The notes beneath the pieces are model-generated. The model had not been told where the DNA came from. It ran no database searches and saw only the letters and a list, made by a program, of their open reading frames with translations. Shown one piece after another: positions 25-55,367 of a stretch of 64,000 nt of DNA. The translations under genes were made by a program, and so were the position numbers. Location of the stretch: positions 14,012,001 through 14,076,000 of the forward strand of contig NW_024704754.1 in the NCBI RefSeq assembly GCF_018977255.1. Direction: 5' to 3'. This DNA comes from Callorhinchus milii. Lineage: Eukaryota. Each line of letters begins with the position of its first letter. Within the stretch, counting starts at the first letter, position 1.

Positions 25-76
25 ATGAGTGTCTCTCACTGCATGCTGGCACTGCTGCTCGCGTGTCTCATCCAGG
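25..76 (+). CDS. Receptor A signal peptide exon [17 protein letters not shown](G)
   Basis: Acceptor tctctccag at 1-9, ATG at 25, hydrophobic core and phase-1 donor G|gtaagg. An upstream non-coding exon must lie outside the window. Confidence 0.85.
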
Positions 77-3000
77 GTAAGGCTGTTTCACCCTTTACCA
101 CCATTATCTCTCTGCTTTAGATCAGTGGTAATCACTAACCATGTGCAAGAGCTTTTCCCAGGAACCCTCTGTCACCATGAAGTGATGGGCTTTGAGGCAG
201 ATCCTGATTCCCATAGAGAGAGCTTCTGGGCAGGTGAGACATAGTAATAACAACAACAACCACAACAACTTGCATATATATAGTACCCCTCATGCCAGGT
301 AGCGACCCAAAGCACTTGACAATGGTGAAGCACGATGCTGAGCCGGGGGGGTGGGGGAGGTGACCGTAGGCACGGTCAAAGAGAAGGTCTTCTGGTGCGA
401 TCTGAAGATGGGGAGGAAGGGGGTAAGGTGGAGGGATAGAGGAAGAGTGTTCCAGAGATTTTGGGCACAGTAGCTAAAAGAACGTCCACTGATGGTGGAA
501 CAGGAGCGACATGCAATTGGCCAGAGCCAGTCAAGTGGAGGCAGCGGGTAATGGGTTGAGGAGTAAGCAGGTCGGAGAAGTAGGGAAGTGGCAGAGTACG
601 AGGAGATTTGAAAACAAGTGTAAGTATCTTGAAATCATTCAGCGTTAAGGAGCCAGTGGTGATTGGCTAGTAGTAATATGTGGTAAACACACAATATGGA
701 ACTCGTGCAACTATGAGGACCCAGGACATTAGCATTTTGGCTCATGGGATTGACAGCATGTCTATGGCAACATGTTTCAATGATGAGCCATGTAGACTAT
801 TTAACTTGGTTTCCTCAAGAGTTGTTTATCTTACCAGAATAAATTCTGCCCCAGGGGCCCCTCCATTCATCTCTCCTCTTCCGCACCTCTGGTTCTGAGG
901 ACTTCATTTTAAACATACAATACAATACAAAATCACATTTGTATAGCACCTTTCACATAAAATATTACTCAAGTTATAGATGAAAACTAAGTGAGTCACT
1001 ATGATACAAACCAGATACTTCTCATCCCAAGTTAATTGATTGAACTACCTAAAACACTTTTTGGGGGGGTCAGCTGGATATCTGACACTTGCAGAAATCC
1101 AACACTGTGCTTAAGTGTATCTAAACCAAACTGAGATATCCATGCATCCCACTTACACATGGAAATACCAGAGATACATTGTGGAATGGACTGTATATTA
1201 TTGCCCTGGAGGAACGCATCCTGCTTACCTAATTCCAGAAAGTTTTGGGAACACGTTGTCAAGAGCCAAGGCTTGGGGATGCCAGAGTGCGCATTGGGGT
1301 ACATCTGCAGTCTAACTACATAGCTTGTCATTGATATCATTGTCTGGCTAGGGTCACACTACCGGTTAGGGCATTGGCTTGCAGTGTTAACAGGAGCTTA
1401 GTGGGATGATGCCCTGCCCCCAGTGACTGGTCTGCCCTTCCAAGTCCTGCAGATGAGCCAGACTGGCTGTGCTTCCATCAGCAGTGCCCTGGAATACGGA
1501 GGATTAACCTGACTCAGGAACCTGGCTTCTGAGACTGCCGCAGAGGATTGGCTCAATTCTAACATTTCATTACCAAACAGATCCTATTTTCCTTCCCTCC
1601 CAATAGAATAATCACTAGTTGGTCATTTGACATCCGCCAAGTGGGGGTTGGAGCCCTCACTAGGTGGATGGTAGCTACCAGGAACACCCTGTGAGCTTCC
1701 CTGTGGGCCACACATCTCAGCTGGATAATTATAGTGGACACTCGGACCTCAGGGAGGAAGCTGAGGAGGGAACCTGAGCTTTTTTAAAGAGGTGAGGAAG
1801 TCCCCCCCCATCCCTATGACTGGGGCTGGACTGACTCCATGGTTTGATGGTTAGAGCCGGTGGGGGAGGGGGGTATTATAAGAGGGGTGTCAGGTTCTGC
1901 CCATGTGCCCAAGTGTCTGCACCCCTCTGTGATTGTTGTGTTGCTGTTCCAGATTCTTCCTCCCCCACCACCCCCCCCAGATGTGTTATAGTGAGAATCT
2001 ACATGAGCGGCTGTTTCTGCCTGACTGGGGGATGGTGGGGGGGAGGTTTGCACTACAATATTAAGTTGAGGGTCTCACAGGCTAAGATGGGGTGGAATGT
2101 CAGGCTTCTGACATCTTAAATACATTTAGTGTAAGTATACATATTACATGTGTTAGACGAGGACATTAATGTTTCCCAATCTTCCCAATGAAGGGGACGG
2201 GGCAGAGAGACCCCACTGACAGGTATTCCCCAGTCAACCAGTACCAGAGTCACACACAGTAAGTCAGTCAGTCTGTTTTCTCTCCCACAGGTTCCGCCCA
2301 TCAATGGAGTGTTACGCTTCCCGAGTCCACTGCTGGGCTGGAGGGAGAGTCTGTAATTCTGGATTGTTCTTTCAGTTACCCTGACCCACCGAATAAACCA
2401 TATACTATATGGGGCCAATGGTTCAAAGGTAATCCATGCAATGAAAGAGCAGAGAAGATATATGAAAGCAACGAAAGCAACAACAGAATAAAATTAACAG
2501 GAAACCTGACAAAGAAAAACTGCTCAATTGAGATAAGTGACCTCAGGAAAACTGATACTGGTCATTACTGCTTCAGGTTTGAAATACCGGGTTTCGATAA
2601 ATGGACCGGAAAACTATCCATCAGTGTCGATGTGTACGGTAAATATTCCTTCTCACTTCTTGTTACCTGTTTGAAAAACCAGCAAACTGACAAGTTTGCA
2701 GTATTTACCGTTGTCGATTTGATGAGGTGACATTTCAGAACATTGTTTATTTCTCTTTCCTTTTGTCAGATCGTCCTGGCAACCCCACTGTTTTCCCAAG
2801 TGAAGTGGCTGAAGGGATCAGCACCACTTTAACGTGTACTTCGTCTAACGTTGTAACACAGGTCAAACCCAAGCTGACCTGGGAAGGAATCACTGAGCTG
2901 ACAGATCAGAAGACCGTGAATAAGGAGAAACAGTCTTTATCTGACCGGAAAATCACCAGTTCATTCACTTTTGTTCCATCATACCAACATCATCTCAAGC

Positions 3001-6000
3001 TGATCAAATGTGTGGTCAGTTGTGCTAACTACCAATGCTCAAAACAAAGCAACATAACGCTTCAGGTCAAATGTAAGTTCCCCATACTGAAGCAATGACA
3101 CAAAACTCGGAGGAAGTTTCAACACAGAGGTTGACATTAAAAAAATGCAGCAAGACATAGATAGGTTAGGTGATTGGGTAGGTAGGTGGCAGATGAAGTA
3201 TAACGTAGGGAAGTGCGAAGTCATCCACCTAGGTAGCAAAAACAGTAGAGCGGGTTATTTTTTAGAAGGGGAGAGATTGGAATGCGTTAGCGTCCAGAGG
3301 GACTTGGGTGTCCTTGTACACCAATCACAGAAAGTTAGTCTGCAGGTGCAGCAGCAATTAGGAAGCCGAACGGTATGTTAGCATTCGTTATGAAAGGATT
3401 AGAGTATAAGAGTAGGGAAGTCTTGCTGCAACTGTATAGGGCCCTGGTGAGACCACAACTGGAATACTGTGTGCAGCTTTGGTCTCCTTATTTAAGGAAG
3501 GATGTACTTATCTTGGAGGGGGTGCAGCGTAGATTTACCAGGTTAGTACCAGGGATGAAGGGGATGAGTTGCGAGGATAGGCTGACCAATTTAGGCCTAT
3601 ATTCTCTAGAATATAGAAGAATTAGAGGGGATATTATAGAAACCTGTAAGATCATCAAAGGGCGTGATAGAGTAGATAGTGGGAGATTGTTTCCCCCGGT
3701 TGGAGAAACTAAAACAACCTTAAAATTAGAGGCAGCCCTTTCGCACTGAGTTGAGGAAGAACTTCTTCACTCAAAGGGTGGTGAATGTATGGAACTCACT
3801 ACATGGGTGAAAAGCAATATGGGGATAAGGCAGGGTCAGGTTATTAACTGGAGTTAGATTAGAAGATCAGCCATGATTGAATGGCTGGGCAGGCTCAAAG
3901 GGCCGAATGGCCTACTCCTCCTAAATGTTATGTTATGTTAATCAACATTCAAATGATCCTAAACTGTACAGAAAGTTGTCAAGAGCTTTTGTACTGGTTC
4001 CATTCTACCACCCGACCTGTCTTTGCCCAATTACCTATATTGGCTCCACACCCTCAGGGATACAGGGCAGCAACATTTTGCTTCCAAGTCCCTTCTGATA
4101 ACTCTAAAGCTGGAGGGACTGAACTTGCCCAGGGGGAAACTGAAAGTGATATAGGAGCGTTATTGACTCATTTCTCACTATGCCAAATCAGTGTAAGGCA
4201 GCAATAAACAAGGCCAACAGGATGTTGGGCTTCATTACTAAATCAGTTGAGATCCTCAGAAGTTTACTGAGGATCTCAACTGATTTAGTAATAGGCTCTG
4301 GTCAGGCCGCTCATTGAATACTGTATAGAGTTCTTGTCAACGCGACAGAAGGGGACTGTCCAGGCCTTAGAGACAGAGCAGAGGTGAGCAATGAGCTTGA
4401 TCCCCAAGCGATAGAGGAATGAGCTATTAGACAAGCTGTGGTTCTTCAGTCTTGAGGGAAAGCAAATCAGAGACTACATATTTTTCAATGGGATTGAGAA
4501 AGTAAACCCAGATCAATATTTCAGAATATATCAAGACAATAAAACAAGAGGATATAAATTTAGAGTAATAAAGGGACATGACAGGAGAGATACCAGGAAG
4601 ATTTTCTTCACCCAGAGAATAATCAATGACAGGAAAGGTGGTAGAGGCCAGGATACTGGACTCTTTTAAAAAGCTACTTGATGCAATGATGAGGAGAATG
4701 GTAGGGTGAGGGTTCTGGAAGAATCAGATCAGATGGGCCAAACAACCTGTATCGTCCACACCAATCATGTGAGATCAAATCATTTCTCTCTCTTGAAATA
4801 ACTCTGGGCCTAAGCAAGCCCCTAATATAATGTCACCCCCAACAGTGTCTGTACCAAGACAGGTGTGTTAAAGGAATTTCTATCATGGAACAAAGTATTT
4901 GATTTGATGTTTGTCTTGCTAATGGGTAGGTTATATAGGTCATGGGGGGCCTCAAAATTAGGCTACCCAATACGTAAAATGTTCATTTTTAGCCTGGGAG
5001 AACACAGATATTGCCCTCCTTGTGTGTGTTTTTATAATAATAATAATCCTTGCATTTGATGTAGCACTTTTCACGTCTTCTAGACGTCTAAAAACACTTC
5101 ACAGAACATACTGTAAGTGAATTGACTGTATATTTGTGGGAGAAAAAACAAAAAAACAAGCTAAGAACCAATTAAGGGACTGCAAAATATTAATGTGCTA
5201 ATTTCCAAATGCAATCAAAGATGGTAATAAATTTGTATGAAAAAGGAGCCCATTTACTGGGAGGGATGTGCTGCCATCTGATGGTCATTTTCACTCAGGC
5301 AAGTCAGCAAAACCCAAACTTAAATAAAATCCTAAACTTTACCCTGAAGCCTCAAAAGTTCCAACAAGCAACAAATTAACTCAAAGAGAATGAACAGGTG
5401 ATAAGAAACATATTAAATACTTACTTCCTGGAGGTACTTACTAGGGAGGACACTATACAATGCCCTACCAACATCCAGCAAACTTTGCTTGAACTCTGGG
5501 ACTTGAATATAAGTGAGGCTGAGATTCTAGAGATGCTCAAGAGGCTCAAAACCAACAGATCCCCTGGGATGGATGGTACCTCTCCATACTTGCAGAGACA
5601 AGACAACACTGACAGATACTGTGAGAGAGTCAATCACTATGGGGGAGGTTCCAATGCACTGGAACAATGTAAACTGAACTCCCGATAATAAAACACTGTC
5701 TATTATCAACACATGGCTTAGATTACCAAGATGTCAATATCCCGGTTGCTTACCACACAATTCTCTCCCATTTCAGATGCCCCCCGAAATACAACAATTC
5801 AAATAAATGAACCTCTGGATATCATTGAGGGGAGTGAAAATGTGACGCTGACGTGCAGCACTGACAGCTACCCTCAAGCTACTCACACCTGGTACAAGAC
5901 GAAAAGACACACAAACACAACACAAACTCTGAACAGTACAGGCAGCGTCTTGTTGTTCAAAACAATATCCAGAATGGATTTCGGAACCTTTACCTGTGTG

Positions 6001-9000
6001 GTAAATAATTCACAGGGAAATGACACCTCTGCAGCTGACATCAATGTCAAGTGTAAGTATTTGGCTTTAACGGATCCTGAGTGGATTATATCACGTTAGA
6101 GTGAGGGCTCTTCTCGCACTTGATGTTTACAGTGGGAGCCGTGTAAGCCAGACATCGGAGACGGCCGTATTGACCGGCATAAGGGTCTGAGGTTAACCGA
6201 AATGACTTCCAACCCCCAGCAGAAGAGCAGCGCTTTCTCACTCCCATTGACATTCCCATGACATTCGGATGGAAAAGGGATCAATTAGCGGCAGCGCTGA
6301 GGTGATTGACAGCCCATTCACAAGCGGCTGCCGGCTGACAATCGCAACTTCCCTCCCTTATTCTTCCCCATTCCTCCACCTCCTCACTGATCGACAGCCC
6401 AACTCAGCCGCTGCTGAATGGCTGGAGTTCACTGATAATCCCCAGTGTTAGAGGATTGAACTATGAGCAATGAATAGGTTAAGCTAAGGCTCTTCAGTCC
6501 TGAGAGAAAATACCTCATAGAGGACTTTAAACAGGTGTTGCAAATGTTAAGTCAGATTGAAAAAGTAAACCCAGAACAATACTTTAGGATTAACCAAATA
6601 ATAGAATATAGTATAATAATAATCCATGCATTTGATATAGTGCCTCATCACGTTGTTGAGACGTCTCAAAGCGTTTCACAGAACATATATTGTAAAGTGG
6701 GTTGACTGTGTATTTTGTGGCCGAACGGCGGCAGCCAATTGCGCACAGCAGTGTCCCACAAACAGTCATGGATTGAGTGGCCAAATTATTATTATTTTCT
6801 AAAGGAATTATTACTCCTGGAAAGAACAATAGGATTGAGGTTTTGCATTATGAAGGGCAATTGCAACGTGATTGTCAGAATTTGTCTGGGAGTGTTCATA
6901 ATCACTGCTCCCTTTACCTTATGCCTTCAGGAGATGAGCTCCTCCATGTGTCTCCGCATCTCTATCACAAGCCTACAAGCTCTGGGTTGTTACTGGAGCT
7001 GCGATATACTCGTGGAGGATTGAGGGAGAGAAGGGAGTGAGATTAGGATCGTGACCTTGACACAGTGACATTGACGAGCTCCTCCCTAGATTATATTGTA
7101 CTGATCTACAATTCTCTCCCATTTCAGATGCCCCACGAAATACAACAATTCAAATAAATGAACCTCTGGATATCATTGAGGGGAGAGAAAATGTGACGCT
7201 GACGTGCAGCACTGACTGCTACCCTCAAGCTACTCACACCTGGTACAAGACAAAAAGACACACAAACACAACACAAACTCTGAACAGTACAGGCAGCGTC
7301 TTGTTGTTCAAAACAATATCCAGAATGGATTCCGGAACCTTTACCTGTGTGGTAAATAATTCACAGGGAAATGACACCTCTGCAGCTGACATCAATGTCA
7401 AGTGTGAGTATTTGGCTTTAACGGCACCTGAGTGGATTATCCGCCGTCAGAGTGAGAGCTCTTCTTGCTCTTGATCTGTGCGGTGCGAGCCGGTTAAACC
7501 AGACATATTGGGGATGACCCTATTGTCCGGCCTAAGAGGCGTCCGAGGTTAACCGACATAGCTTCCCACCCAGCAGAGGAACAGCTCTTCCTCTCTCCCA
7601 TTGACGTTCCCATCGGACAGAAATGGGACCAATTAGGGGCAGCGCTAAGGTGATTAACAGCCCATTCACAAGCGGCTGCCGACTGTCAAACAATCGCAAT
7701 TTACCTCCATTATCCTTCCCCATTCCTCCACCTCCTCACTGATCGACAGCCCAACTCCAGCCGCTGCTGAATGGCTGGAGTTCACTGATAATCCCCAGTG
7801 TTAGAGAATTGAACTATGAGCAATGAATAGGTTAAGTTAAGGCTCTTCAGTCCTGAGACAAAATACCTCATAGAGGACTTTAAACAGGTGTAGCAAATGT
7901 TAAATCAGATTGAAAAAGTAAACCCCGAACAATATTTTAGGATTAACCAAATAGTAGAATATAGTATAATAATAAGCCTTGCATTTGATATAGCGCCTCA
8001 TCACATTGTTGAGACGTCTCCAAGAGCTTCACAAACCATATAATGTAAAGTGGGTTGACTGTGTATTTTGTGGGCGAATGGCAGCAGCCAACTGCGGACA
8101 ATAGTGTCCCACATACAGTGATGCATTCAGTGGCCAAATTATTATTATTTTTTAAAGGACTTATTACTCCTGGAAAGAACAATAGGATTGAGGTTTTGCA
8201 TTATGAAGGGCAATTACATCGTGATTGTCAGAATTTGTCTGGGCGTGTTCATAACAACTGTTTCCATTACCTATGCCTTCAGGAGATGCGCTCCTCCATG
8301 TGTCTCCGCATCTCTATCACAAGCCTGCAAGCTCTGGGTTGTTACTGGAGCTGCGATATACTCGTGGAGGATTGAGGGAGAGAAAGGAGTGAGATTGGGA
8401 TTGTGACCTTGACACAGTGACGTTGACGAGCTCCTCCCGAGATTATACGGTTCTGATCTACAATTCTCTCCCATTTCAGATCCCCCCCGAAATACAACAA
8501 TTCAAATAAATAAACCTCTGGATATCATTGAGGGGAGAGAAAATGTGACGCTGACGTGCAGCACTGACAGCTACCCTCAAGCTACTCACACCTGGTACAA
8601 GACAAAAAGACACACAAACACAACACAAACTCTGAACAGTACAGGCAGCGTCTTGTTGTTCAAAACAATATCCAGAATGGATTCCGGAACCTTTACCTGT
8701 GTGGTAAATAATTCACAGGGAAATGACACTTCTGCAGCTGACATCAATGTCAAGTGTAAGTATTTGGCTTTAACGGATCCTGAGTGGATTATATCACGTT
8801 AGAGTGAGGGCTCTTCTCGCACTTGATGTTTACAGTGGGAGCCGTGTAAGTCAGACATATCGCGGACGGCTGTTTTGTCCGGCCTAAGGGGCGTCCAAGG
8901 TTAACCGACATTGCTTCCCACCCAGCAGAGGAGCAGCGCTTCCTCCCTCCCATTGACATTCCCATCGGAAGAAAAAGGGACCAATTAGTGGCAGCGCTAC

Positions 9001-12000
9001 GGTGATTAACAGCCCATTCACAAGCAGCTGCCGACTGTCAATCAATCGCAATTTCCCTCCCTTATTCTTCCCCATTCCTCCACCTCCTCACTGATCGACA
9101 GCCCAACTCCAGCCGCTGCTGAATGGCTGGAGTTCACTGATAATCCCCAGTGTTAGAGGATTGAACTATGAGCAATGAATAGGTTATGTTAAGGCTCTTC
9201 AGTCCTGAGACAAAATACCTCACAGAGGACTTTAAACAGGTGTAGCAAATGTTAAATCAGATTGAAAAAGTAAACGCAGAACAATACTTTAGGATTAACC
9301 AAACAGTCGAATATAGTATAATAATAATCCATGCATTTGATATAGTGCCTCATCACGTTGTTGAGACGTCCCAAAGCGTTTCACAGAACATATATTGTAA
9401 AGTGGGTTGACTGTGTATTTTGTGGGCGAATGGCAGCAGCCAACTGCGGACAATAGTGTCCCACAAACAGTGATGCCTTCAGTAGCCAAATTATTATTAT
9501 TTTCTAAAGGAATTATTACTCCTGGAAAGAAGAATAGGATTTAGGTTTTAGATTATGAAGGGCAATTGCATCGTGATAGTCAGAATTTGTCTGGGAGTGT
9601 TCATAATCACTGCTCCCTTTACCTTATGCCTTCAGGAGATGAGCTCCTCCATGTGTCTCCGCATCTCTATCACAAGCCTGCAAGCTCTGGGTTGTTACTG
9701 GAGCTGCGATATACTCGTGGAGGATTGAGGCAGAGAAGGGAGTGAGATTGGGATTGTGACCTTGACACAGTGACATTGACGAGCTCCTCCCTAGATTATA
9801 CAGTACTGATTTACAATTCTCTCCACATTTCAGATGCCCCCCGAAATACAACAATTCAAATAAATGAACCTCTGGATATCATTGAGGGGAGAGAAAATGT
9901 GACGCTGACGTGCAGCACTGACAGCTACCCTCAAGCTACTCACACCTGGTACAAGACGAAAAGAGACACAAACACAACACAAACTCTGAACAGTACAGGC
10001 AGCGTCTTGTTGTTCAAAACAATATCCAGAAGGGATTCCGGAACCTTTACCTGTGTGGTAAATAATTCACAGGGAAATGACACCGCTGCAGCTGACATCA
10101 ATGTCAAGTGTGAGTATTTGGCTTTAACGGCTCCTGAGTGGATTATACCACGTTAGAGTGAGGGCTCTTCTCGCTCTTGATGTTTACAGTGGGAGCCGTG
10201 TAAACCAGACATCGGGGACGGCTGTATTGTCAGCCTAAGGGGCGACCGAGGTTAACCGACATAGCTTCCCACCCAGCAGAGGAGCAGCGCTTCCTCCCTC
10301 CCATTGACATTCACATCGGAAGGAAAAGGAACCAGTTAGCGGCAGCGCTAAGGTGATTGACAGCACATTCACTGCTGCCGACTATCAATCAATCGAAATT
10401 TCCCTCCCTTATTCTTCCCCATTCCTCCACCTCCTCACTGATCGACAGCCCAACTCCAGCCGCTGGTGAATGGCTGGAGTTCACTGATAATCCCCAGTGT
10501 TAGAGGATTGAACTATGAGCAATGAATAGGTTAAGTTAAGGCTCTTCAGTCCTGAGAGAAAATGCCTCATAGAGGACTTGCAAATGTTAAATCAGATTGA
10601 AAAAGTAAACCCCGAACAATATTTTAGGATTAACCAAATAGTAGAATATAGTATAATAATAATCCATGCATTTGATATAGCGCCTCACCACGTTGTTGAG
10701 ACGTCTCCAAGCGCTTCACAAACCATATAATATAAAGTGGATTGACTTTGTATTTTGTGGGCGAATGGCAGCAGCCAACTGCGGACAATAGTGTCCCACA
10801 AACAGTGATGCCTTCAGTAGCCAAATTATTATTATTTTTTAAAGGAATTATTACTGCTGGAAAGAATAATAGGATTTTCGTTTTGAATTAAAAAAGGCGA
10901 ATGCATCGTGATTGTCAGAATTTGTCTGGGAGTGTTCATAACTACTGTTTCCATTACCTATGCCTTCAGGAGATGAGCTCCTCCATGTGTCTCCGCATCT
11001 CTATCACAAGCCTGCAAGCTCTGGGTTGTTACTGGAGCTGCGATATACTCGTGGAGGATTGAGGAGAGAAGGGAGTGAGATTGGGATTGTGACCTTGACA
11101 CAGTGTCATTGACGAGCTCCTCCCGAGATTATATTGTACTGATCTACAATTCTCTCCCATTTCAGATCCCCCCCGAAATACAACAATTCAAATAAATAAA
11201 CCTCTGGATATCATTGAGGGGAGAGAAAATGTGACGCTGACGTGCAGCACTGTCAGCTACCCTCAAGCTACTCACACCTGGTACAAGACAAAAAGTCACA
11301 CAAACACAACACAAACTCTGAACAGTACAGGCAGCGTCTTGTTGTTCAAAACAATATCCAGAATGGATTCCGGAACCTTTACCTGTGTGGTAAATAATTC
11401 ACAGGGAAATGACACTTCTGCAGCTGACATCAATGTCAAGTGTGAGTATTTGGCTTTAACGGCTCCTGAGTGGATTATACCACATTGGAGTGAGGGCTCT
11501 TCTCGGTCTTGATGTTTACAGTGGAACCCGTGTGAGCCAAACATCAGGGACGACCATATTATCTGGCCTAAGGGACATCCGTGATTAACTGAAATAACTT
11601 CCAACGCCCAGCAGAGGAGCAGCGCTTCCTCCCTACTATTGACGTTCCCTAAGGACGATAAAAGGACCATTTAGTGGCAGCGCTGAGGTGATTGACAGCC
11701 AATTCACAAGCGGCTGCCGGCTGTCAATCAATCGCAATTTCCCTCCCTTATTCTTCCCCGTTCCTCCACCTCCTCACTGATCGACAGCCCAACTCCAGCC
11801 GCTGCTGAATGGCTGGAGTTCACTGATCATCCCCAGTGTTAGAGGATTGAACTATGAGCAATGAATAGGTTAAGTTAAGGCTCTTCAGTCCTGAGAGAAA
11901 ATACCTCATAGAGGACTTTAAACAGGTGTATCAAATGTTAAATCAGATTGAAAAAGTAAACCCAGAACAATATTTTAGGATTAACCAAATAGTAGAATAT

Positions 12001-29342: not shown

Positions 29343-29382
<40 letters not shown>

Positions 29383-44321: not shown

Positions 44322-44522
44322 CTATTTTACCCGCAAATTGGAATAAATATTTTGCTCTGAGTCATCTTCTACTGGTTTCAGTGCCTCCGGCTGTTTAGTA
44401 AAATATATGGAAGCGTACACCAAACTGGCTTCAGAATCCCTCTTGTCAGCTTTCTGAGATGTGTTCACTTCCGGCTGCATGCACTCCTCCTCCGGCTCAG
44501 CACCTCTACGCATTTGTTTAGG
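44322..44522 (-). CDS. Receptor B terminal ITIM exon
   Basis: Open frame paralogous to 21743-21943, with AATAAA at 44312-44317 (minus). Confidence 0.75.
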   Translation of the reverse strand, partial: PKQMRRGAEPEEECMQPEVNTSQKADKRDSEASLVYASIYFTKQPEALKPVEDDSEQNIYSNLRVK

Positions 44523-47500
44523 CTGGTTAATCATAATAGAGTGATTGTTGGAATTTATGTACTTGTGAAGTAAAAATGGTTATTGAAGGGGAGGATAAAA
44601 TAGATTTCTTTACACACAGGATGGTCAGAATACACAACTCTCCACCACAAACTACTGTTGTAAATTCAAAATTATTTTGAAAATGAATTACTTGCTTGAC
44701 AAGGGGGACTATTTAAGGATACTATCCAACTGAACGTCAACAAGATGGAAGCCGTACACCTTCGCTTCCGCCAACATCTTCACTCCTGCGGCTCTGACCT
44801 CCTCAAACTACCGGCCTTTCCTTAAGATTTACCGAACATGTACATTACCTGGGCATCAGTTTCGACCCCCAGATGTCCTTCCACCCCACATCTGGTCCCA
44901 AATCAGAACCACTTTCCTCCACCCCAATCACATTGCCTTCCTCCGACATATGTCAGCCCCAACAAAGCCGAAACCCTCGTCTACGCATTCGGCACCTCCC
45001 CCTCGACTGTTCCAATGCCCTCCTCATTGGTCTCCCCAGCTCCAATACCCACGAACTACAACTGATTCAGAACTCTGCCGCCCGTATTCTCACTCGCTTC
45101 TAACTAACCAAAGTCCTATACGGTTACAACATAATTTACCTACAATGTTTTACTCAGAATCCCATTTGGCTTCTTGATAGCTTTCTGAGCCTGCCACCCC
45201 ACTTTTAGTAATAGAGTGGAATCCGCTTTAATCAGACGTCAGTTAATCCCGGACATCGGGTAAATTGGGCAAACACCAGTCCCCGATTCATTTGTATTCT
45301 TACCCGATTTAAATATGCCGGTTAATTCGTAAAACAATCCAGTTAATCCGGACAAAATGCAGCGCTTGTCGTTGCTGAATGTACTCACTCGCGCCTTCTG
45401 TGTCTCGAGCGGCTTCATTCAGCCACGAGAGGCTCCAGGATACAGATGGGAGGAGTCAAATTGCGATTGATTGACAGCGGACTCCAGCCATTCACAAGTG
45501 ACTGGAGTTGGGCTGTCAATCAGTGAGGGGGTGGAGGAACGGGGAAGAAACAAGCGAGGGAATGGGAGGAGTCAAATCACGATTGATTGACAGCTGAAGC
45601 CGCTTATAAAATGGCTGGAGCGCTCATCCATTCACAAGCGACTCCAAGGCTGTCAATCACCTCGAAGCTGACGCTAATTGGTCCTTCCCATTGATTGGGA
45701 ACAGGAGGAGGGAGGAGGTGCCGCCATCACTCCTCTGCTGGACAGGAAGAGGTAAAGGTAATTCGGTTAACTTCAGGCAACACTTAGGACGGACAAAACG
45801 CCCAATCCCGATGTGTCCGGCTTAACTGGTTTCCACTGTATATAACAACAACAACAACAAAATTACATTTATAGAGCGCCTTTCACATCGGGAGGATGTC
45901 CCAAAGCACTGTGTTTGCACCTCTTCCTTAAGGATGCACCAAGACATTAGAAAAAGAGACGACAGGTTTACATTTGCAAAGGGCAATTTCTGTTCAGATA
46001 GCGGAAGTTTTTCTTTACCCAGAGGTTAATTGATGACTGGAACAGGTTTGCAGGGCAGGACATGGTTGAGGCCAGGACATGGGACTCATTTTAAAAAACA
46101 CCTCAAGTGCTGTTTGCATCAATCTGCTGGTTGCTCATTTCACATCACCGAGCTGGTGAGGAACCTTAGTGTTTTGTATTGTGTTGTTTGATCTTCAACT
46201 ATTCTTCAAACTTTACATCTGGCTTTCACTTCTTAAACTTATTTCACTTCCCCACTGCTTCAGCCCTCATTCATGCCTTCTCCTGCTCCAGGCTTGATTA
46301 TTCCCCAGATCTTCTGTACTCAAGCTACTGATATCAAGAACTCTGTAGTGCAGGTCCTCCCTGTAACAGGCACTGTGAGCGCATCACCCCCAGCCTCACA
46401 TGGCTCCACTGGCTTCAGATATCCTATTGAATCAAGAATCTTATTCCCACTATGAGTGGTTGAGCCTTTAGCATTGCCCCAACTCTCTGAAATTCCAATC
46501 CAGAGTCCCTCTACCTTTCCCACTCCCTCTGTGCCTTCAAATGTTCCTGAAGTGCTATCCCTTTGACCTTATTTTCAGTCACCTTTCCTCTCATTTCGTC
46601 AACCCCCACCCCAAGCTTTGATTCTGTCAGTTGTGTGAAGGATTTTGAGACATCTTTCTGTTGCGAAAGGTGCTTGTCCTTTCCTATAGTCTATCAATAT
46701 CTTATTGCAGTCTTGTACAGTTGTTCTCACAGTTTACCAATCAACCCAATTTAGTACTACCAGTAAACATGGCTGTACAGACCGCAAAGAAAAACAGGAA
46801 AAGGTTGTAAAGGCTCAGTGATACACCAAACATTGCATTTCACTATGAGCCACTGAGAGAGAAAAAACACCTCAATTGAAATAACAATTAAAATGAGTAA
46901 CATCTTCACAAACCTGAATGGAATTTGGAAATTCATGGATCACCGTGGCTTTGGAATCATTTTTCATCTGTTTCTCTGATGGAATACAAAAGAAGATGAT
47001 TGGTACTTTTAGATTAACAACAACAACAACAACAACAACAAGATTCCATTTATTGAGCGCCTTTCACGTCGGGAGGACGTCCCAATTAAGATTGATGATG
47101 CACCAGAATAAAAGCAATGTGCAGCAATAATATAAATCATAATCCTTGCATTTGATATAGTGCTTTTCACATCTTCTCGACATCTCAAAGCACTTCACAG
47201 AATAGACTGTAAAGTGAATTGACTGTATTTTTGTGGGCGAAACGCAGGCAGCCAATTGCGCACAGCAGTGTCCCACAAACAGTCGTGGATTGAAATGACC
47301 AATTTATTATTGGTTTTTTTGAGGGATTATTATCAGGCGTGTGGAGTAAGGAAATTTACCCAAGGTTTCGCCCTGCCTGGAATCAAAACCAGGTCTCTCG
47401 CTTGCAAGGCTACAGGACTCCGCCATTGTAAAACACCATTGTAGTTAATTTGGATGGTTATGCATTTTACTCTATCTTACTATAGTTACTGGGAACTGTG

Positions 47501-50500
47501 TCCATATTGTCAATATCTGTTATATAATGTCATGAAACTCTATTCCAAATATAAGGATTATTATTTATAATAATAATTCTTGCATTTTTTGATATAGCGC
47601 CTTATCATGTTTATGAGCCGTCTCAAAGCACCTCACAGAATATACTGTAAAGTGAATTGACTATATTTTGTGGGCGAATCGCGGCAGCCAATTGTGAACA
47701 GTAGTGCCCATACAAAGCACAGACCCTGTTTTCTGGGTTGGGTGGGGGAGACCAAGACAGTGCAGTAGATTTATCAATCATTCATTGATAACAGACAAAC
47801 ATATTAACAGAGTTATCAACACTGGACACTTCAAACATCAGTCAGTTATTTACTCTAAACTGCTTTCAGATAATAATAATAATAATAATAATAAGTGGAA
47901 TTAATACTGTCTCAATATGGGGTTGAACTCAGAATTTTATAACGTAACCAACTAATCCAAGCTGCCACCTTGGTTGAGCAGAATTGAAGTGCAGTCTGGG
48001 TATGTATGGGTTTCATCAGATATTGCACTGGGATCTGTAACATTGACACAGAAGAGGACTTACCTTGGTTTAGTTGTTTTATGCAGCACACTAGCACCAC
48101 AGTCAAGAGAAGGATGAAGACGACAATAACTCCGACTCCAATATATATTAATAGCCATATTGCTGACCAACCTGCCAACATAAAGATTCAAATAGTTCTG
48201 ATCAACGCAATTATATCAAAGCTGTTTAGCAATAAGATTCTAAGGATTATTATTATTATGTATTTACAGATTAATATGAGACAACACTGTATTAACACAA
48301 TCCTCCAACAGTGACAGTGACCTCTATCAGGTCACTAATTATGCACTTTCCATGTGAGGCACAAGAAGTGCCACTGATGTCATTTCTTTTGGGAACTGTC
48401 ATCAATGGTACTTGTTGCACAAAGTGCACAGGAATTATTTCTGATCGTCCCGGTGTCTGACATATGTGGAAACCCATATCCATGTTTAGTATCTGACCCA
48501 AATGAGAGACCTGCATATGTATGCCTCCTACACATGGACATTTCCTGGTATCTGGAATGGGATATGCACTATTAGAAGGGAGAAGGAAGTGTCACTCCAA
48601 TAATCTTCCAAATAAATTGATTGTTCACCACATGGGCACCTGATGGGAACTTGATAGGCACAAAATGGCCACTGCGTTTGCCTATAAAAGCAATTACTAG
48701 ATTTGACAAGAAATGTGAACTTGAATAACAATATGGAATCCAGGGACAAGATGGCTAACAATTCAACCAAGATGACACCTGGAGACAAAGAGTAAGGATG
48801 CGTACTGAGTTGGGGGAGGGAGAATTTTAGAAACATTAGACTGAAGAATTCACTGGGAATGATAACTGTAGACAAGTCTTCATTTTGAGCAGGTTAGCAA
48901 ACGATAGTGATCTATTGATATAGCCCATGACCAGTTAAATTCAGTATGATGTACAGATCCAATTTGCAGATTTCTTAACAGAAATTGTTTGTAGAGAACC
49001 TCAGGTTTGTAAATGAAGATACCTTTCAGTAATTGGAAATAAGGAACAGAAACTCATGGGAACTCCATTTGGATCCATTTCCAGAGTGGTTTTCACTGGT
49101 CATTGAAAATTCTAACAGGATTTCTTAATATGGAATCCTATTAGAAATTAGACAGCAGTGAAACTAAAATATAGTGAGGTATGTTGTCACAATTCTTTCA
49201 GATCCTCAAGGTGAGCCTACCTTAACTATGCCACTGAATGACCTACACAATTTTTGCTGACCTCCAATTAAACTGATTAATAAATAACTCAGTTACTTCT
49301 CTGTTTTGACTTTGAGCAACTTTCCCTTGAATACACACGACCATATGAATTCTCAGCTCGACATGAAACACAAAAGATTTCTAATCTTTAATTTCCAGGC
49401 TGTTCGTAGACTTATTTTTATGGATTTGGGAAGTTATGGAGTCAGTTAGATTCCAAATGATGGTTGCTGGAGGGTTGGCGTGTGTGACACACTTGTAATT
49501 CAGCCCATTTTGACTTATGTTAATTTCACTGGGTCCATCTGTAAGGGGAAAATAACAAACATTCAAATCACATTTTTCCCTCTTCCGCTGATTTTCAGCC
49601 TTTTCCCTCGTCTCCTTAGACCAGAAATCTGCTTAACTGCCGGTTAACCCCAAACAAGGGAAAAATTGAAAAAAACTCTTGGCCCCGATTCATTTGTACA
49701 CTTACCTGCATTAAATATGTCAGTTAATTGATCGCCATCCCATCCCTTCCAATGGGAACGGAAATGGGAGGGAGGAAGTGCTGCTCCTCTGCTGGGCAGG
49801 AAGGTAATTTGCAGCCAAACAAAGTTAATATAATTCACTGAGTTCTGTGAGAGTCCAGGATTGTAACATAAACTCCCAGATTTAAATAATTGATGTCCTG
49901 TTTGGTTAATTAAGATTGTATTTTGGTTAATCTCGGACGCCTCTTAGGCCGGACAAAACGGCCATCCCCGATATGTCTGACTGAACCGTCTCCCACTGTA
50001 TACATCAAGAGCGAGAAGAGCTCTCACTCTAACGTGGTATAATCCACTCAGGAGCCGTTAAAGCCAAATACTCACACTTGACATTGATGTCAGCTGCAGA
50101 GGTGTCATTTCCCTGTGAATTATTTACCACACTGGATATTGATTTCAACAAGACGCTGCCTGTACTGTTCAGAGTTTGTGTTGTGTTTGTGTGTCTTTTT
50201 GTCTTGTACCAGGTGTGAGTAGCTTGAGGGTAGCTGTCAGTGCTGTACGTCAGCGTCACATTTTCTCTCCCCTCAATGATATCCAGAGGTTCATTTATTT
50301 GAATTGTTGTATTTCGGGGGGGATCTGAAATGGGAGAGAATTGTAAATCAGTACTGTATAATCTAGGGAGGAGCTCGTCAATGACACTGTGTCAAGGTCA
50401 CAATCCCAATCTCACTCCCTTCTCTACCTCAATCCTCCACGAGTATATCGCAGCTCCAGTAACAACCCAGAGCTTGCAGGCTTGTGATAGAGATGCGGAG

Positions 50501-53500
50501 ACACATGGAGGAGCTCATCTCCTGAAGGCATAAGGTAAAGGGAGCAGTGATTATGAACACTCCCAGACAAATTCTGACAATCACGTTGCAATTGCCCTTC
50601 ATAATGCAAAACCTCAATCCTATTGTTCTTTCCAGGAGTAATAATTTCTTTGGAAAATAATAATAATTTGGCCACTCAATCCACGACCTTTTGTGGGACA
50701 CTCCTGTACGCAATTGGCTGCCGCTATTCGGCCACGAAATACAGTCAATCCACTTTACAGTATATGTTCTGTGAAGCTCTTTGAAACGTCTCAACAACGT
50801 GCTGAGGCTCTATATCAAATGCAAGGATTATTATTTTCTATATTCTACGATTTGGTTAATCCAAAAGTATTGTTTGGGCTTTACTTTTTCAATCTGATTT
50901 AACATTTGATACACCTGTTTAAAGTCCTCTATGAGGTATTTTTTCTCAGGACTGAAGAGCCTTAATTTAACCTATTCATTGTTCATAGTTCAATCCTCCA
51001 ACACTGGAGGTTATCAGTGAACTCCAGCCATTCACCAGCGGCTGGAGTTGGGCTGTCGATCAGTGAGGAGGTGGAGGAATGGGGAAGGATAAGGGAGGGA
51101 AATTGCGATTGATGGCAGTCGGCAGCCGGTTAACCCCAAACAATGGGAAAATTTAAAAAAACTCTTGGTCCCGATTCATTTGTACACTTATCTGCATTAA
51201 ATATGTCGGTTAATTGATTGCCTTCCCTTCCCTTCCAATGGGAACGGCAATGGGAGGGAGGAAGTGCTGCTCCTCTACTGGGCAGGAAGGTAATTTGCAG
51301 CCAAACAAAGTTCATGCAAAGTTTGCTGCATATTTTGGTGTTCTCCATAGAAAATACCTCCAGGAAGTAGTTTTTAATATGTTTCCTTTCACCTGTTCAT
51401 TCTCTTTGAGTTAATCTATTGCTGGTTGGAAGTTTTGAGACTTCGGGATAAAGTTTAGGATTTTATATAAGTTTGGGTTTAAGGCTAACTTGCCTTAGTG
51501 AAAATGACCATCAAATGGCAGCACATCCCTCAAAGAAAATGGGCTCCTTTTTCAGACAAAATCATCACCATCTTTGATTGCATTTTGAAATCTGCACGTC
51601 AACATTTTGGAATCCCGAAAATGGTTTCAAACTTGTTTTTGTTATATAAAAACACGCACAAGTTGGATAAAATCTGTGTTCTCCCTGTCTAAAAATGAAC
51701 ATTTTACTTATTGGGTAGCCTAATTTTGAGGCCCCCATGACCTACATAACCTACCCATTAGCAAGACAAACATCAAATCAAATACTTTGTTCCATGATAG
51801 AAATTCCTTTAACACACCTGTCTTGGTACAGACACTGTTGGGGGTGACATTATATTAGGGGATTGCTTAGGCCCAGAGTTAGTTCAAGAGAGAGAAATGA
51901 TTTGATCTCACATGATTGGTGTGGACGATACAGGTTGTTTGGCCCATCTGATCTGATTCTTCCAGAACCCTCACCCTACCATTCTCCTCATCACTGCATC
52001 AAGTAGCTTTTTAAAAGAGTCCCGTATCCTGGCCTCTACCACCTTTCCTGTCATTGATTATTCTCTGCGTGAAGAAAATCTTCCTGGTATGTCTCCTGTC
52101 ATGTCCCTTTTATAATCCTAAATCCTCTTGTTTTATTGTCTTGATACATTCTAAAATATTGATCTGGGTTTACTTTCTCAATCCATTGAAAAATATGTAG
52201 TCTCTGATTCGCTTTCCCTCAAGACTGAAGAACCACAGCTTGTCTAATAGCTCATTCCTCTATCGCTTGGGAATCAAGCTCATTGCTCACCTCTGCTCTG
52301 TCTCTAAGGCCCAGACAGTTCTGTCGCGTTGACAAGAACTCTACACAGTATTCAATGAGCGGCCTGACCAGAGCCTATTCAGCCTCAGTAAACTTCTGAG
52401 GATCTCAACTGATTTTGTAATGAAGCCCAACATCCTGTTGGCCTTGTTTATTGCTGCCTTACACTGATTTGGCAGTGAATAACGCTCCTATATCACTTTC
52501 AGCTTCCCCCTGGGCAAGTTCAGTCCCTCCAGCTTCAGAGAGTTGAGTTATCAGAAGGGACTTGAAAGCAAAATGTTGCTGCCCTGTATCCCTGAGGGTG
52601 TGGAGCCAATATAGGCAATTGGGCAAAGACAGGTCGGGTGGTAGAATGGAACCAGTACAAAAGCTCTTGACAACTTTCTGTGCAGTTTAGGATCATTTGA
52701 ATGCTGCTTCAGTATGGGGAACTTACATTTGACCTGAAGCGTTATGTTGCTTTGTTTCGAGCATTGGTATTTGGCACAACTGACCACACATTTGATCAGC
52801 TTGAGATGATGTTGGTATGAGGGAATAAAAGTGAATGAACTGGTGATTATCCGGTCAGATAAAGACTGTTTCTTCTTGTTCACGGTCTTCTGATCTGTCA
52901 GCTCAGTGATTCCTTCCCAGGTCAGCTTGGGTTTGACCTGTGTTACAACGTTAGACGAAGTACACGTTAAAGTGGTGCTGATCCCTTCAGCCACTTCACT
53001 TGGGAAAACAGTGGGGTTGCCAGGACGATCTGACAAAAGGAAAGAGAAATAAACAATGTTCTGAAATGTCACCTCATCAAATCGACAACGGTAAATACTG
53101 CAAACTTGTCAGTTTGCTGTTTTTTCAAATAGGTAACAAGAAGAGAGAAGGAATATTTACCGTATACATCGACACTGATGGATGGTTTTCCGGTCCATAT
53201 AACGAAATTCATTATTTCAAACCTGAAGCAGTAATGACCAGTATCAGTTTTCCTGAGGTCACTTATCTCAATTGAGCAGTTTTTCTTTGTCAGGTTTCCT
53301 GTTAATTTTATTCTGTTGTTGCTTTCGTTGCTTTCATATATCTTCTCTGCTCTATCATTGCATGGATTACCTTTGAACCATTGGCCCCATATAGTATATG
53401 GTTTATTCGGTGGGTCAGGGTGACTGAAAAAACAATCCAGAATTACAGACTCTCCCTCCAGCCCAGAAGTGGACTTGGGAAGCGTAACACTCCATTGATG

Positions 53501-55156
53501 GGCAGAACCTGTGGGTGAGAAATCAGACTGACTGACTTACTGTGTGTGACTCTGGTACTGGTTGACTGGGGAATACCTGTCAGTGGGGTCTCTCTGCCCC
53601 GTCCCCTTCATTGGGAAGATTGGGAAACATTAATGTCCTCGTCTAACACATGTAATATGTATACTTACACTAAATGTATTTAAGATGTCAGAAGCCTGAC
53701 ATTCCACCCCATCTTAGCCTGTGAGACCCTCAACTTAATATTGTAGTGCAAACCTCCCCCCCACCACCCCCCAGTCAGGCAGAAACAGCCGCTCATGTAG
53801 ATTCTCACTATAACACAGCTTTAATCAGGGGGGGTGGTGGGGGGAGGAAGAATCTGGAACAGCAACACAACATTTGCTGAGGTGTGCAGACACTTGGGCA
53901 CATGGGCAGAACCTGACACCCCTCTTATAATACCCCCTCCCCCACCGGCTCTAACCATCAAACCATGGAGTCAGTCCAGCCCCAGTCAGAGGGATGGGGG
54001 GGGGTTCATCACCTCTTTAAAAAAGCTCAGGTTCCCTCCCCAGTTTCCTCCTGAGATCCTAGTGTCCACTACAATTGTCCAGCTGTGATGTGTGGCCCAC
54101 AGGGAAGCTCACAGGGAGTTCCTGGTACCTACCATCCACCCAGTGATGGCAAAAACCCACTCTTGTCGGATGTCGAACGACCAATTAGTGATTATTCTCC
54201 TTGTGGGGAAGGTAAACAGTGTCTTTTTGGAGCTGAACTTGCTCCAAGTTGACATGTTTGCCAACATAATGTTAACGGGTAGGGTGGCCCTGGCCAGACA
54301 ACGATATCAATGAGAAACTTTGTGGTTTTAGCTGCTGAGACTGCAGCAGTATCTCAGTGCACATTCTGGGGTCCCCAAGCCTTGGCTCTTGCCAACCTGC
54401 AACTAAAACCTTCTAGAATTAGGTAAGCAGGATGCATCCCTGCAGAGAGATAACGACAACGACAAAATTACATTTGTATAGCGCCCTTCACATCCCAAGG
54501 AGCTGGACAGACAGAGTTACGTACCCGACTGAGGGTCGAGGTGAGGAAGGGCAGTGGGGGGAGCAGGGAGATTGATAGAGGAGGGTCTTGAGGTGAGTTT
54601 TGAAGGTGGCGAGGGAGGGCTTTGAAGGTAAGGACCAGGATCTTGAACTGTATCCTCTGTGTCATGGGAAGCAAGTGGAGTTGGGCAAGGATGGGCGTGA
54701 TAGGGTCGTGGAGCCTAGTGCGGGAGAGGACACGGGCTGCAGAGTTCTGGATGAGCTGCAGCCTGTGGAGGGAGGAGTTGGGGAGGCTGACAAGCAGCGA
54801 GTTTGCGTAGTCGAGCCTCGATGTAATGAAGATGTATGATATGTATGATAGATAGTATGCATTCCATTCCAACAATCTATCTCTGGGATTTCCACATGTA
54901 GGTGGGGTGCATGGAAATTCAATTTGATTTGGATACTCTTCAGCATAATGATGGATCAGATATTCTGCAAGTGTCTGACTTGTGGAGAGTGGACGGACGG
55001 TCTCGAGGATTTGCTTGGAAATGGAAACAGAACGTTAATAGTTATGTTTAAAAATCTATCTAAACAACATGGGTTAATGGTGGTAAAGGGTGAAACAGCC
55101 TTACCCTGGATGAGACACGCGAGCAGCAGTGCCAGCATGCAGTGACAGACACTCAT
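44322..55156 (-). CDS. Siglec/CD22-like receptor B, inverted paralog of A (about 440 aa if the damaged exon is skipped; otherwise truncated or a pseudogene)
   Basis: Exons on minus: 55156-55105 signal, 53508-53161 V, 53029-52727 C2, 50324-50076 Cys-less repeat exon, 49538-about 49297 damaged Ig exon, 48171-48064 TM, 46975-46914 cytoplasmic, 44522-44322 terminal (LVYASI, NIYSNL). All exons except the damaged one are open with GT-AG sites. Confidence 0.7.
45214..45838 (-). mobile_element. Tc1/mariner (pogo/Tigger-like) non-autonomous MITE, about 625 bp
   Basis: TA-flanked ends TA|GAGTGGAA.. and ..TTCCACTG|TA, subterminal gttaatccggac repeats and no ORF. Partial copies occur at 16440-16847, 18910-19270 and in each C2 unit. 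Confidence 0.7.
47125..47420 (-). mobile_element. tRNA-derived SINE, same family
   Basis: Matches 24741-25096 with internal deletions. Confidence 0.75.
48064..48171 (-). CDS. Receptor B transmembrane exon
   Basis: 108 nt. [35 protein letters not shown], uncharged. Confidence 0.8.
49297..49538 (-). pseudogene. Receptor B membrane-proximal Ig exon, frameshifted and with altered donor
   Basis: A 1-nt deletion relative to A gives ..SLEIKD-TAG (stop at 49381-49383). The donor A|gtaagt has become Agaagt. Confidence 0.75.
50076..50324 (-). CDS. Receptor B degenerate repeat exon lacking both Ig cysteines
   Basis: 249 nt (276 minus 27), frame kept, splice sites intact. Confidence 0.75.
52727..53029 (-). 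CDS. Receptor B C2 exon (D2)
   Basis: 303 nt, open, with 4 amino-acid differences from A. Confidence 0.88.
53161..53508 (-). CDS. Receptor B V-set exon
   Basis: 348 nt, open. ..[25 protein letters not shown], with the essential Arg retained. Confidence 0.88.
54455..54835 (-). mobile_element. L2 3' fragment, present in arm B only
   Basis: [43 protein letters not shown] with tail. It splits an older repeat that is uninterrupted in A at about 1130-1320. Confidence 0.85.
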
Positions 55157-55235: not shown

Positions 55236-55367
55236 NNNNNNNNNNNNNNNNNNNNNNNNNNNNNNNNNNNNNNNNNNNNNNNNNNNNNNNNNNNNNNNNN
55301 NNNNNNNNNNNNNNNNNNNNNNNNNNNNNNNNNNNNNNNNNNNNNNNNNNNNNNNNNNNNNNNNNNN
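55236..55367. other. Assembly gap (132 N) just upstream of the receptor B signal exon
   Basis: Run of N. Confidence 1.

Follow-up and report, generated by a model that had tools for sequence, protein, structure and literature searches.

Two genes encoding Siglec-like receptors, referred to as A and B, were found tail to tail on the arms of an inverted duplication in a 64,000-nucleotide stretch of the chimaera Callorhinchus milii genome (MU249844.1:14,012,001-14,076,000, assembly GCA_018977255.1; referred to as the window, with all positions counted from its first base). Gene A (plus strand) is intact, whereas gene B (minus strand) has two damaged exons and lacks a cytoplasmic exon. We conclude with moderate confidence that A is the working copy of an inhibitory receptor, and that B is a decaying copy, probably an unprocessed pseudogene, of which patches have been kept similar to A by conversion.

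Self-BLAST of the window revealed an inverted match between 1573-23742 (plus) and 54230-41438 (minus) with 78-95% identity, far beyond chance. When 10 kb of upstream sequence from locus L002 was included (window base 1 corresponds to base 10577 of this locus), the collinear match was found to continue past the window for ~6.7 kb upstream on the A side, and as far as 61487 on the B side; the lengths of the A and B arms were ~30 and ~20 kb, respectively. A spacer of 17.7 kb (23743-41437) between the arms contains an ARL3 ortholog on the plus strand. This arrangement is best explained by an old inverted segmental duplication of a cartilaginous-fish-specific gene for a Siglec-like inhibitory receptor, with ARL3 between the arms. 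Exons of both genes were set by reading frame and AG/GT boundaries; the two arms and the features of gene A, including its immunoglobulin (Ig) and transmembrane (TM) exons, are as follows.

1-23742, plus strand: A arm of the inverted duplication, running ~6.7 kb further upstream of the window (self-BLAST, L002 extension)
41438-61487, minus strand: B arm of the inverted duplication (self-BLAST, upstream extension)
25-76, plus strand: gene A signal-peptide exon (18 residues, phase 1), inside a 338-bp 5' cassette
2291-2638, plus strand: gene A V-set exon, with W23, C43, C95, R113, and W122 in precursor numbering (Pfam, PDB alignments)
2770-3072, plus strand: gene A second Ig (C2-type) exon, D2 (Pfam, PDB alignments)
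5757-12955, plus strand: gene A tandem array with a period of ~1351 bp, 5.3 units (BLAST)
5777-6052, 7128-7403, 8480-8755, 9834-10109, 11166-11441, and 12523-12798, plus strand: six 276-nt Ig exons of the gene A array
13330-13578, plus strand: gene A membrane-proximal Ig-like exon (no Pfam match)
14742-14849, plus strand: gene A TM exon
15540-15601, plus strand: gene A 62-nt juxtamembrane exon, needed for the reading frame
16441-21185, plus strand: gene A tandem duplication carrying two cytoplasmic exons, with no counterpart exon in B (self-BLAST)
17881-18072 and 20008-20187, plus strand: gene A cyt1 and cyt2 exons, each coding GYENF and CIYSNI
21743-21943, plus strand: gene A last coding exon, with LVYASI and IIYSSL

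The revised gene A protein (1116 residues) begins with a signal peptide and with V-set and C2-type domains, followed by six I-set domains that are nearly identical, a small Ig-like domain next to the membrane, a TM segment, and a cytoplasmic tail. From the V exon to the stop codon (1098 residues), the translation was identical to that of NCBI P0001, "hemicentin-1-like [Callorhinchus milii]". The first coding exon of P0001 (122-235) carries no signal peptide. The exon at 25-76 supplies one: its GT donor is in phase 1, as is the V exon that follows, and its product agrees with the signal peptide annotated for the paralog P0003 (see below). The public model seems to be wrong in its 5' end as well as in its name. 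Eight of the nine Ig exons were recognized by Pfam; the ninth (membrane-proximal) was classed as Ig-like solely from its Cys/Trp pattern and from homology with the final Ig domain of the paralog. The ectodomain contained 42 N-glycosylation sequons, 35 of which were located in the six repeats. Among the six Tyr motifs (GYENF and CIYSNI, twice each, LVYASI, and IIYSSL), only LVYASI and IIYSSL fit the consensus of the immunoreceptor tyrosine-based inhibitory motif (ITIM), the other four being of the YxN type. The TM cores of A and B were both uncharged; R876 of A is located just outside the hydrophobic core, with Trp at that place in B. The initial annotation of this DNA had counted nine Ig exons and six Tyr motifs in A and no charged TM in either gene, all of which stood; it did not list the 62-nt exon, and only two of its motifs are canonical ITIMs. 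Gene A is predicted to encode a type-I membrane protein with a heavily glycosylated stalk (the 35 sequons of the repeats). Once the tail is phosphorylated on tyrosine, its two ITIMs and four YxN motifs would be expected to bind phosphatases of the SHP type and adaptors of the Grb2 type, and thereby to damp leukocyte activation.

Siglecs have an N-terminal V-set domain followed by C2 domains; their hallmarks are a strand-F arginine pairing with the carboxylate of sialic acid and a B-E instead of a B-F disulfide, and in published structures, aromatic residues of strands A and G contact the ligand. The V exon region scored above the Pfam cut-off for V-set (45.9 bits) as well as for the CD22-type first Ig family, Ig_CD22 (35.3 bits). 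The best match of V-D2-D3 among solved structures was MAG, aligned end to end over Ig1-3 (1.8e-30), and the next PDB sequence matches were CD22 (3e-16), Siglec-8 (3.5e-16), CD33, sialoadhesin, and Siglec-5, -7, and -10. R113, in FRFE, aligned with the ligand-binding Arg of MAG (YYFRGD), CD22 (GLRME), and Siglec-8 (FFRLE); it was present in both A and B, and was nearly invariant in a 22-sequence alignment. W23 aligned with Trp of MAG ("hW") and CD22 ("kW"), and W122 with that of CD22 ("ekW") and Siglec-8 ("mkW"), while C43 (LDCSF) and C95 (KNCSIEI) corresponded to the B and E strand cysteines of MAG, CD22, and Siglec-8. An AlphaFold model of V-D2 (22 homologs) had a mean pLDDT (predicted local distance difference test) of 90, and its top 22 PDB fold matches were all Siglecs. 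By sequence, Pfam, and predicted fold, the V-D2 module is of the Siglec type, as proposed when the pair was initially described as Siglec-like receptors. The N-terminal V-set domain of A should bind sialic acid through R113, flanked by W23 and W122.

A third Siglec-like paralog, S0, was found 20 kb upstream of A.

L001 10001-29536 (MU249844.1:13,971,349-13,990,884), same strand as A: S0 (P0003, NCBI "MAG-like", 522 amino acids)

S0 has the same exon plan as A and is 41% identical to it; no further Siglec fragments were found around S0 and A in the flanking loci examined. The intergenic region between S0 and A contains a direct repeat of several kb (75-86% identity) with an offset of ~7.3 kb (L002 1-3740 against L001 32725-38726). 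Orthologs of S0 at 65-68% identity were found in a ray, a skate, and two sharks, whereas the nearest ray relatives of A were 36-39% identical. In Narcine, an Ig gene of 759 residues lies 8 kb downstream of the S0 ortholog in the same orientation, and since S0 and the A-like gene have the same order in this ray, the arrangement "slow gene, then fast gene" is old. The A-like locus of Pristis contained three to four I-set exons, and neither ARL3 nor an inverted copy was detected within 10 kb of it; judging from the loci compared, the inverted pair is restricted to the chimaera lineage. At this locus (L004 49283-49522 and 38886-46720), the membrane-proximal Ig and extra I-set exons are unused in the public 565-residue model, and the repeat number, which varies among species, may be under-annotated.

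A maximum-likelihood tree was constructed from V-D2 only, and was rooted on shark CEACAM-like proteins. It contained few reference sequences: besides the genes in the window, P0003 and its orthologs, and two ray genes, we included reptile and teleost CD22, teleost Siglec-5-like, mouse MAG, human CD22, and human Siglec-8 (the last three taken from the PDB-search alignments). All chondrichthyan sequences (A, B, the ray A-like genes, and the S0 group) formed a single clade with 99/99 support, which was separate from the CD22 clade, the Siglec-8/teleost clade, and MAG, although the deep nodes were weak. In this V-D2 tree with few references, A and B fell outside the tetrapod and teleost CD22 clade; several relatives are labeled CD22-like by NCBI. 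Mouse MAG was not sister to the chondrichthyan clade although MAG was the best PDB match, with weak deep nodes and a different number of domains. The phylogeny envisaged in the initial annotation, here run against CD22, MAG, and Siglec-8 among others, grouped V-D2 as a chondrichthyan-specific Siglec clade. The assignment of the DNA to a non-mammalian vertebrate in that annotation agrees with the source, Callorhinchus milii.

The exons and relics of gene B, set by the same approach, are as follows.

55105-55156, minus strand: gene B signal exon, intact, with one S-to-C change, abutting a run of N
53161-53508, minus strand: gene B V-set exon, frame intact, R113, W23, and W122 kept, ten residues different from A
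52727-53029, minus strand: gene B second Ig exon (D2), intact
51125-51315, minus strand: remnant of an upstream repeat unit that B has lost; it duplicates the stretch after the repeat exon, 49639-49829 (BLAST)
50076-50324, minus strand: single repeat exon of gene B, damaged by a 27-nt in-frame loss, both Ig cysteines gone (alignment to A, Pfam)
49300-49538, minus strand: gene B membrane-proximal exon, disabled by 9-nt and 1-nt deletions, with a premature stop and the GT donor lost
48064-48171, minus strand: gene B TM exon, intact
46914-46975, minus strand: gene B 62-nt juxtamembrane exon, intact
44322-44522, minus strand: gene B last coding exon, intact, with LVYASI kept and the distal motif (NIYSNL) no longer a canonical ITIM

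In the repeat exon of B, the first Cys is replaced by Tyr and the second lies within the deleted 27 nt; the Ig_3 score decreased to 20.8 bits, compared with 48.3 for A (cut-off of 30). The frameshift in the membrane-proximal exon leads to a stop after LEIKD, upstream of the TM exon. A counterpart of the YxN cytoplasmic exon of A (cyt1/cyt2) was not found in the B arm by exon alignment and arm comparison. Exon-by-exon alignment confirmed that the two paralogs share signal, V, D2, TM, and terminal exons, and the previous account of B, with two intact Ig exons, a degenerate spacer exon, a damaged Ig exon, and two Tyr motifs, was also borne out: V and D2 are intact, the repeat exon is damaged, the membrane-proximal exon is frameshifted, and two Tyr motifs (LVYASI and NIYSNL) are present. 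The second copy is unannotated in public data.

The description of the pair as one expanded and one contracted gene was right, as shown by the unit tree and by a relic junction in B. The array of A was established by BLAST, because Tandem Repeats Finder, with a longest period of 500 against the 1351-bp unit, gave no array. Its units were 4.5-8% apart, while the array exons differed by 2-3%, with a ratio of non-synonymous to synonymous differences per site (pN/pS) of 0.74. In the unit tree, the unit of B nested among those of A, beside the last, and the split between U3, U4, and U5 on one side and U2, U6, and B on the other had 100% support. We rejected this tree as proof that the array predates the A/B split, because a conversion mosaic could mimic the pattern. 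All five inter-repeat introns of A are built in the same way: the downstream intron contributes its first 157 bp and, from a more distal part, a remnant of 44 bp, and the upstream intron contributes 815 bp. A thus amplified a unit already carrying internal deletions. The same 815 bp precede the single repeat exon of B, and are themselves preceded by a 191-bp copy of the post-exon sequence (51315-51125 against 49829-49639, 93.7%); therefore, B once had an upstream unit, the exon of which was deleted. The stalk of A was lengthened by a recent six-fold amplification of one Ig exon. B lost upstream repeat units and the YxN exon, its remaining repeat being without the disulfide cysteines.

The divergence between the arms was strongly mosaic: 0-25% per 150 bp in the chained alignment. 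In parts of several introns (intron 1, the one between D2 and the array, and those of the cytoplasmic region), it was ~16-20%. Lower values were found over 1723-5028, which covers V and D2 with their introns (~3%), between the last repeat and TM (2-6%), near the signal exon (0.7%), and in a tract of the 3' flank (0-3%). Mean values were 8.0% for non-exon and 4.4% for exon sequence, and the heterogeneity of the non-exon part was very strong (chi2 of 460 on 79 df). The clearest conversion tract is the 338-bp 5' cassette, in which the signal exon is flanked by 234 bp before the ATG and by 49 bp of intron: A and S0 are 97.6% identical over it, whereas the rest of S0 is ~67% alike and only within exons. 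For B, the 161 bp that can be read ahead of the run of N share 99.4% identity with A. Furthermore, the signal peptides co-vary by lineage, with MLALLLACL in both chimaera genes and TLALIAMCL in ray genes of both types. A run of 132 N (55236-55367) is located directly upstream of the B signal exon, where the near-identical cassette would continue. Outside the genes, a 463-bp patch is 98.5% identical between the arms (59552-60014 on the B side, and ~5.2-5.6 kb upstream of window base 1) in surroundings with 7-15% divergence, and may be either a further conversion tract or a conserved regulatory element.

We infer that the mosaic resulted from an old duplication overlaid by several short gene-conversion tracts. 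The initial annotation had cited gene conversion for mammalian paired Siglecs, with which it compared A and B, and the mosaic, in which the 5' and extracellular part is far more alike than the cytoplasmic part, is of the kind that conversion produces. On the other hand, the near-identity of N-terminal exons that it cited for the mammalian pairs did not hold for A and B: the V exons differ at 14 nt, 12 of which are non-synonymous, and six of the 14 fall within 14 nt just before the G-strand Trp.

2587-2600, plus strand (B coordinates 53212-53199): cluster of six A/B nucleotide differences in the F-G loop, PGFDK in A and MNFVI in B (permutation p = 6e-4)

Within a V-D2 tract diverged by ~3-4.5% against a background of 16-20%, the V domains differ by ten residues, four of which are in the binding loop. 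No donor copy of the F-G loop patch of B was found elsewhere in the window. Over the shared intact exons (1074 nt), there were 40 non-synonymous and 8 synonymous differences, corresponding to a ratio of non-synonymous to synonymous rates (dN/dS) of 1.37; by exon, the ratio was 1.5 for V, 0.29 for D2, and 3.2 from TM to the last exon. Since there is no close outgroup, these changes are unassigned to the A or B lineage.

The initial annotation regarded B as a partner tuned differently from A; however, the evidence leans toward decay. Disabling lesions are present in constitutive coding exons (frameshift and donor loss at 49538-49300; loss of cysteines and 27 nt at 50324-50076), a cytoplasmic exon has been lost, there is no annotated protein, and the dN/dS of ~1.4 over the remaining exons, not assigned to either lineage, gave no sign of purifying selection. 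Normal splicing of its frameshifted membrane-proximal exon would be impossible, and B is most likely an unprocessed pseudogene or becoming one. Repeated short conversion between the inverted arms may have kept patches alike, foremost the 5' cassette and the V-D2-to-TM tract, with one event also involving S0, and conversion from A is probably why most B exons are still open. Several points weigh against this reading. Six exons of B keep open frames with AG/GT sites. All Ig exons of A and B are in phase 1-1, and thereby B has in-frame skipping products: a membrane protein of 440 residues when the disabled exon is skipped, and a protein of 357 residues with a V-C2-TM-ITIM layout when both damaged exons are skipped. 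B may still be transcribed, judging from a 5' cassette almost identical to those of A and S0. Diversifying selection acting on a functional receptor could likewise account for a dN/dS above 1 and for the significant clustering of changes next to the Trp of the binding site. The absence of B from protein databases is weak evidence because tail fragments of A were likewise not found: no B-like protein was detected among 5.8 billion sequences in the length ranges searched, and a search with the TM-to-tail segment of B was uninformative, giving no match for either A or B. Finally, the inter-domain disulfide typical of Siglecs is absent (see below), and lectin activity is thus not assured.

Among the alternatives, the one that survives best, although we regard it as rather doubtful, is that B is a working short inhibitory receptor from which the damaged exon(s) are skipped, with a V-C2(-spacer)-TM layout, one ITIM, and one ITIM-like/YxN motif. 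Such a protein would be nearer the membrane and signal more weakly than A, which corresponds to the difference in reach and strength initially proposed. The 440- and 357-residue products with intact splice sites, the ligand triad kept in B, the cassette 99.4% identical to that of A, and the F-G loop cluster with dN/dS above 1, as in fast-evolving immune lectins, are all consistent with it. However, no B transcript or protein is on record, the repeat exon without both cysteines is under the Pfam cut-off, the open frames are explicable by conversion from A, and the non-synonymous excess is not significantly above neutrality. In a slightly more tentative version, B would be a newly made short CD33-like receptor with an altered binding loop, derived from a long MAG/CD22-like gene by exon loss. 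The chondrichthyan Siglec cluster would then consist of the slow S0 and a fast inhibitory gene, evolving by the devices of mammalian CD33-related Siglecs (inverted duplication, amplification and loss of exons, and short conversion tracts), with conversion keeping a promoter-plus-signal cassette identical in all members. If B were such a receptor, it would be a living example of how short Siglecs arise.

It is unlikely that these genes encode adhesion or inhibitory receptors of the immunoglobulin superfamily that resemble Siglecs without binding sialic acid. This possibility derives from the cysteines: the inter-domain Cys that defines the Siglec V-C2 link is replaced (EGTCVSIPC in MAG and EGACVWIPC in CD22, against EGESVILDC), the first Cys of CxxxxC being Ser and D2 having no partner Cys, and the same loss was found in S0 and the ray relatives. 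An extra pair, C67 and C111, is present in the V domains of A, B, and the ray A-like genes but absent in S0 and mammalian Siglecs, and C111 is located only two residues before the ligand-binding R113. C67 and C111 may form an additional disulfide that replaces the missing one. Nectins and SIRP also appeared in the fold list, but lower down; every top sequence and fold match was a Siglec, the Arg, both Trp, and the B-E cysteines aligned, and the clade was split from the CEACAM-like outgroups with 100% support.

We consider it very improbable that B encodes a secreted decoy, in which the frameshifted exon is included and a soluble V-D2 lectin competes with A for ligands. Read-through of 49538-49300 does stop after LEIKD before the TM exon, and human SIGLEC16P likewise gives a truncated product (PMC5701461); however, an exon without a GT donor would probably not be recognized by the splicing machinery, transcripts with a stop codon so far ahead of the final exon junction are normally removed by nonsense-mediated decay, and no such protein is on record. 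An origin of the second copy in errors of assembly (mis-scaffolding of a haplotype, or collapse or duplication of a contig), for which one might cite the run of N adjoining the B signal exon and the 99.4% identity of the flanking 161 bp to A, was rejected as hardly credible, and allelic variation does not fit either, because non-exon divergence averages 8% and reaches 25%, the arms differ on a kilobase scale (six units against one, and a cytoplasmic exon present against absent), B has its own flanking inverted repeat, and ARL3 lies between the arms.

The remaining features of the window are as follows.

29387-36328, plus strand: ARL3 ortholog, with coding exons near 29387-29527, 31976-32098, 33261-33311, 34297-34515, and 36278-36328 (PDB ARL3, E = 2e-30)
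39603-40841, no strand assigned: left copy of a second inverted repeat bracketing the whole B arm (self-BLAST)
62164-63856, no strand assigned: right copy of the same repeat (self-BLAST)

Two exon peptides of the ARL3 ortholog matched solved ARL3 structures at 9e-18 and 2e-30, well above ARL2. ARL3 alone was confirmed as a neighbor: a PDCD4-like gene, also named in the initial annotation, was not recognized among open segments of at least 55 amino acids in 23.7-29.4, 36.3-41.4, and 61.4-64 kb, where no profile search was run on the segments. The repeat around the B arm is 97.5% identical over 596 bp and weaker beyond. It might promote inversion of B, or represent a scar left when the duplication formed. 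A transposon origin found no support: the ~140 kb examined contained this single pair and no more copies, and there was no transposase-like frame inside. Fragments of reverse-transcriptase frames of the LINE (long interspersed nuclear element) type were found at 3145-3749, 18528-18800, 20634-20886, 30642-31410, 38618-39495, 43319-43792, and 54468-54946, and a short interspersed element recurs about a dozen times (e.g. 6613-6825, 24740-25083, and 57658-57867). Several of these fragments sit in introns of A and B, and account for part of the difference in arm size. Besides the run of N described above, the window contains another at 18440.

The chimaera carries a separate clade of ITIM-bearing Siglec-like genes, in which the order of S0 followed by an A-like gene is common with a ray, and the fast member appears to be undergoing remodeling by processes already described for the Siglec clusters of primates. 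Our literature searches yielded no paper on the Siglecs of cartilaginous fishes. Teleost surveys reported no inhibitory CD33-related Siglecs in fish, and did not cover cartilaginous fishes; fish Siglec lists based on teleosts contain Siglec-1, CD22, MAG, and Siglec-15 only (PMC7226832). The locus provides targets for the question of whether the recognition of self through sialic acids by inhibitory receptors is as old as the jawed vertebrates. The evolutionary pattern itself is familiar from mammals and is here found in a cartilaginous fish, and the advance, made by sequence analysis, is modest; the interest lies in the lineage, in the shared 5' cassette, and in corrections to the annotation, where a "hemicentin-1-like" model is misnamed and without a signal peptide, and a second copy is missing.

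Paired receptors share extracellular homology and expression, but signal in opposite directions (PMC5701461). The functional analogy to Siglec-5/14 or Siglec-11/16 drawn in the initial annotation fails for A and B: both tails are of the inhibitory type with LVYASI and neither TM core is charged, so that there is no division into an ITIM partner and a charged-TM partner without an ITIM. In their evolution, SIGLEC11 and SIGLEC16(P) are nevertheless similar to A and B: they are neighboring inverted Siglec genes with fragmentary converted tracts over the upstream region and first exons, relaxed constraint on the converted exons, and one member that is often a pseudogene still exchanging sequence (PMC5701461). 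The primate pair is head-to-head at ~9 kb, whereas A and B are tail-to-tail with a 17.7 kb spacer containing ARL3; Siglec-16 is activating through a charged TM residue and DAP12, in contrast to the inhibitory-type tails and uncharged TM cores of A and B; and the V domains of A and B differ in the binding loop.

MAG (Siglec-4) was the best solved-structure match by sequence and fold, and has the same order of V, C2, and I-set domains, with an aligned Arg, N-terminal Trp, and B-E cysteines. However, the identity is only ~23-30%, MAG is a myelin protein with five Ig domains and with the inter-domain disulfide, its tail lacks the set of ITIMs and YxN motifs found in A, and mouse MAG did not group with the shark clade. 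CD22 (Siglec-2) is similar to A in its long multi-Ig stalk, in its six cytoplasmic tyrosines comprising ITIMs and a Grb2 motif of the YEN type, and in the Pfam match to Ig_CD22. On the other hand, A is outside the tetrapod/teleost CD22 clade, its second domain is MAG-like and not common with teleost CD22, the domain number differs, and its stalk consists of near-identical recent repeats. The mammalian CD33-related Siglecs, for which no orthology to A or B was shown in the tree, are similarly lineage-specific and fast-evolving, with duplication, exon gain and loss, pseudogenization, gene conversion, and tails carrying an ITIM and an ITIM-like motif; CD33 itself, with V, one C2, TM, and two Tyr motifs, has the layout of the possible short form of B.

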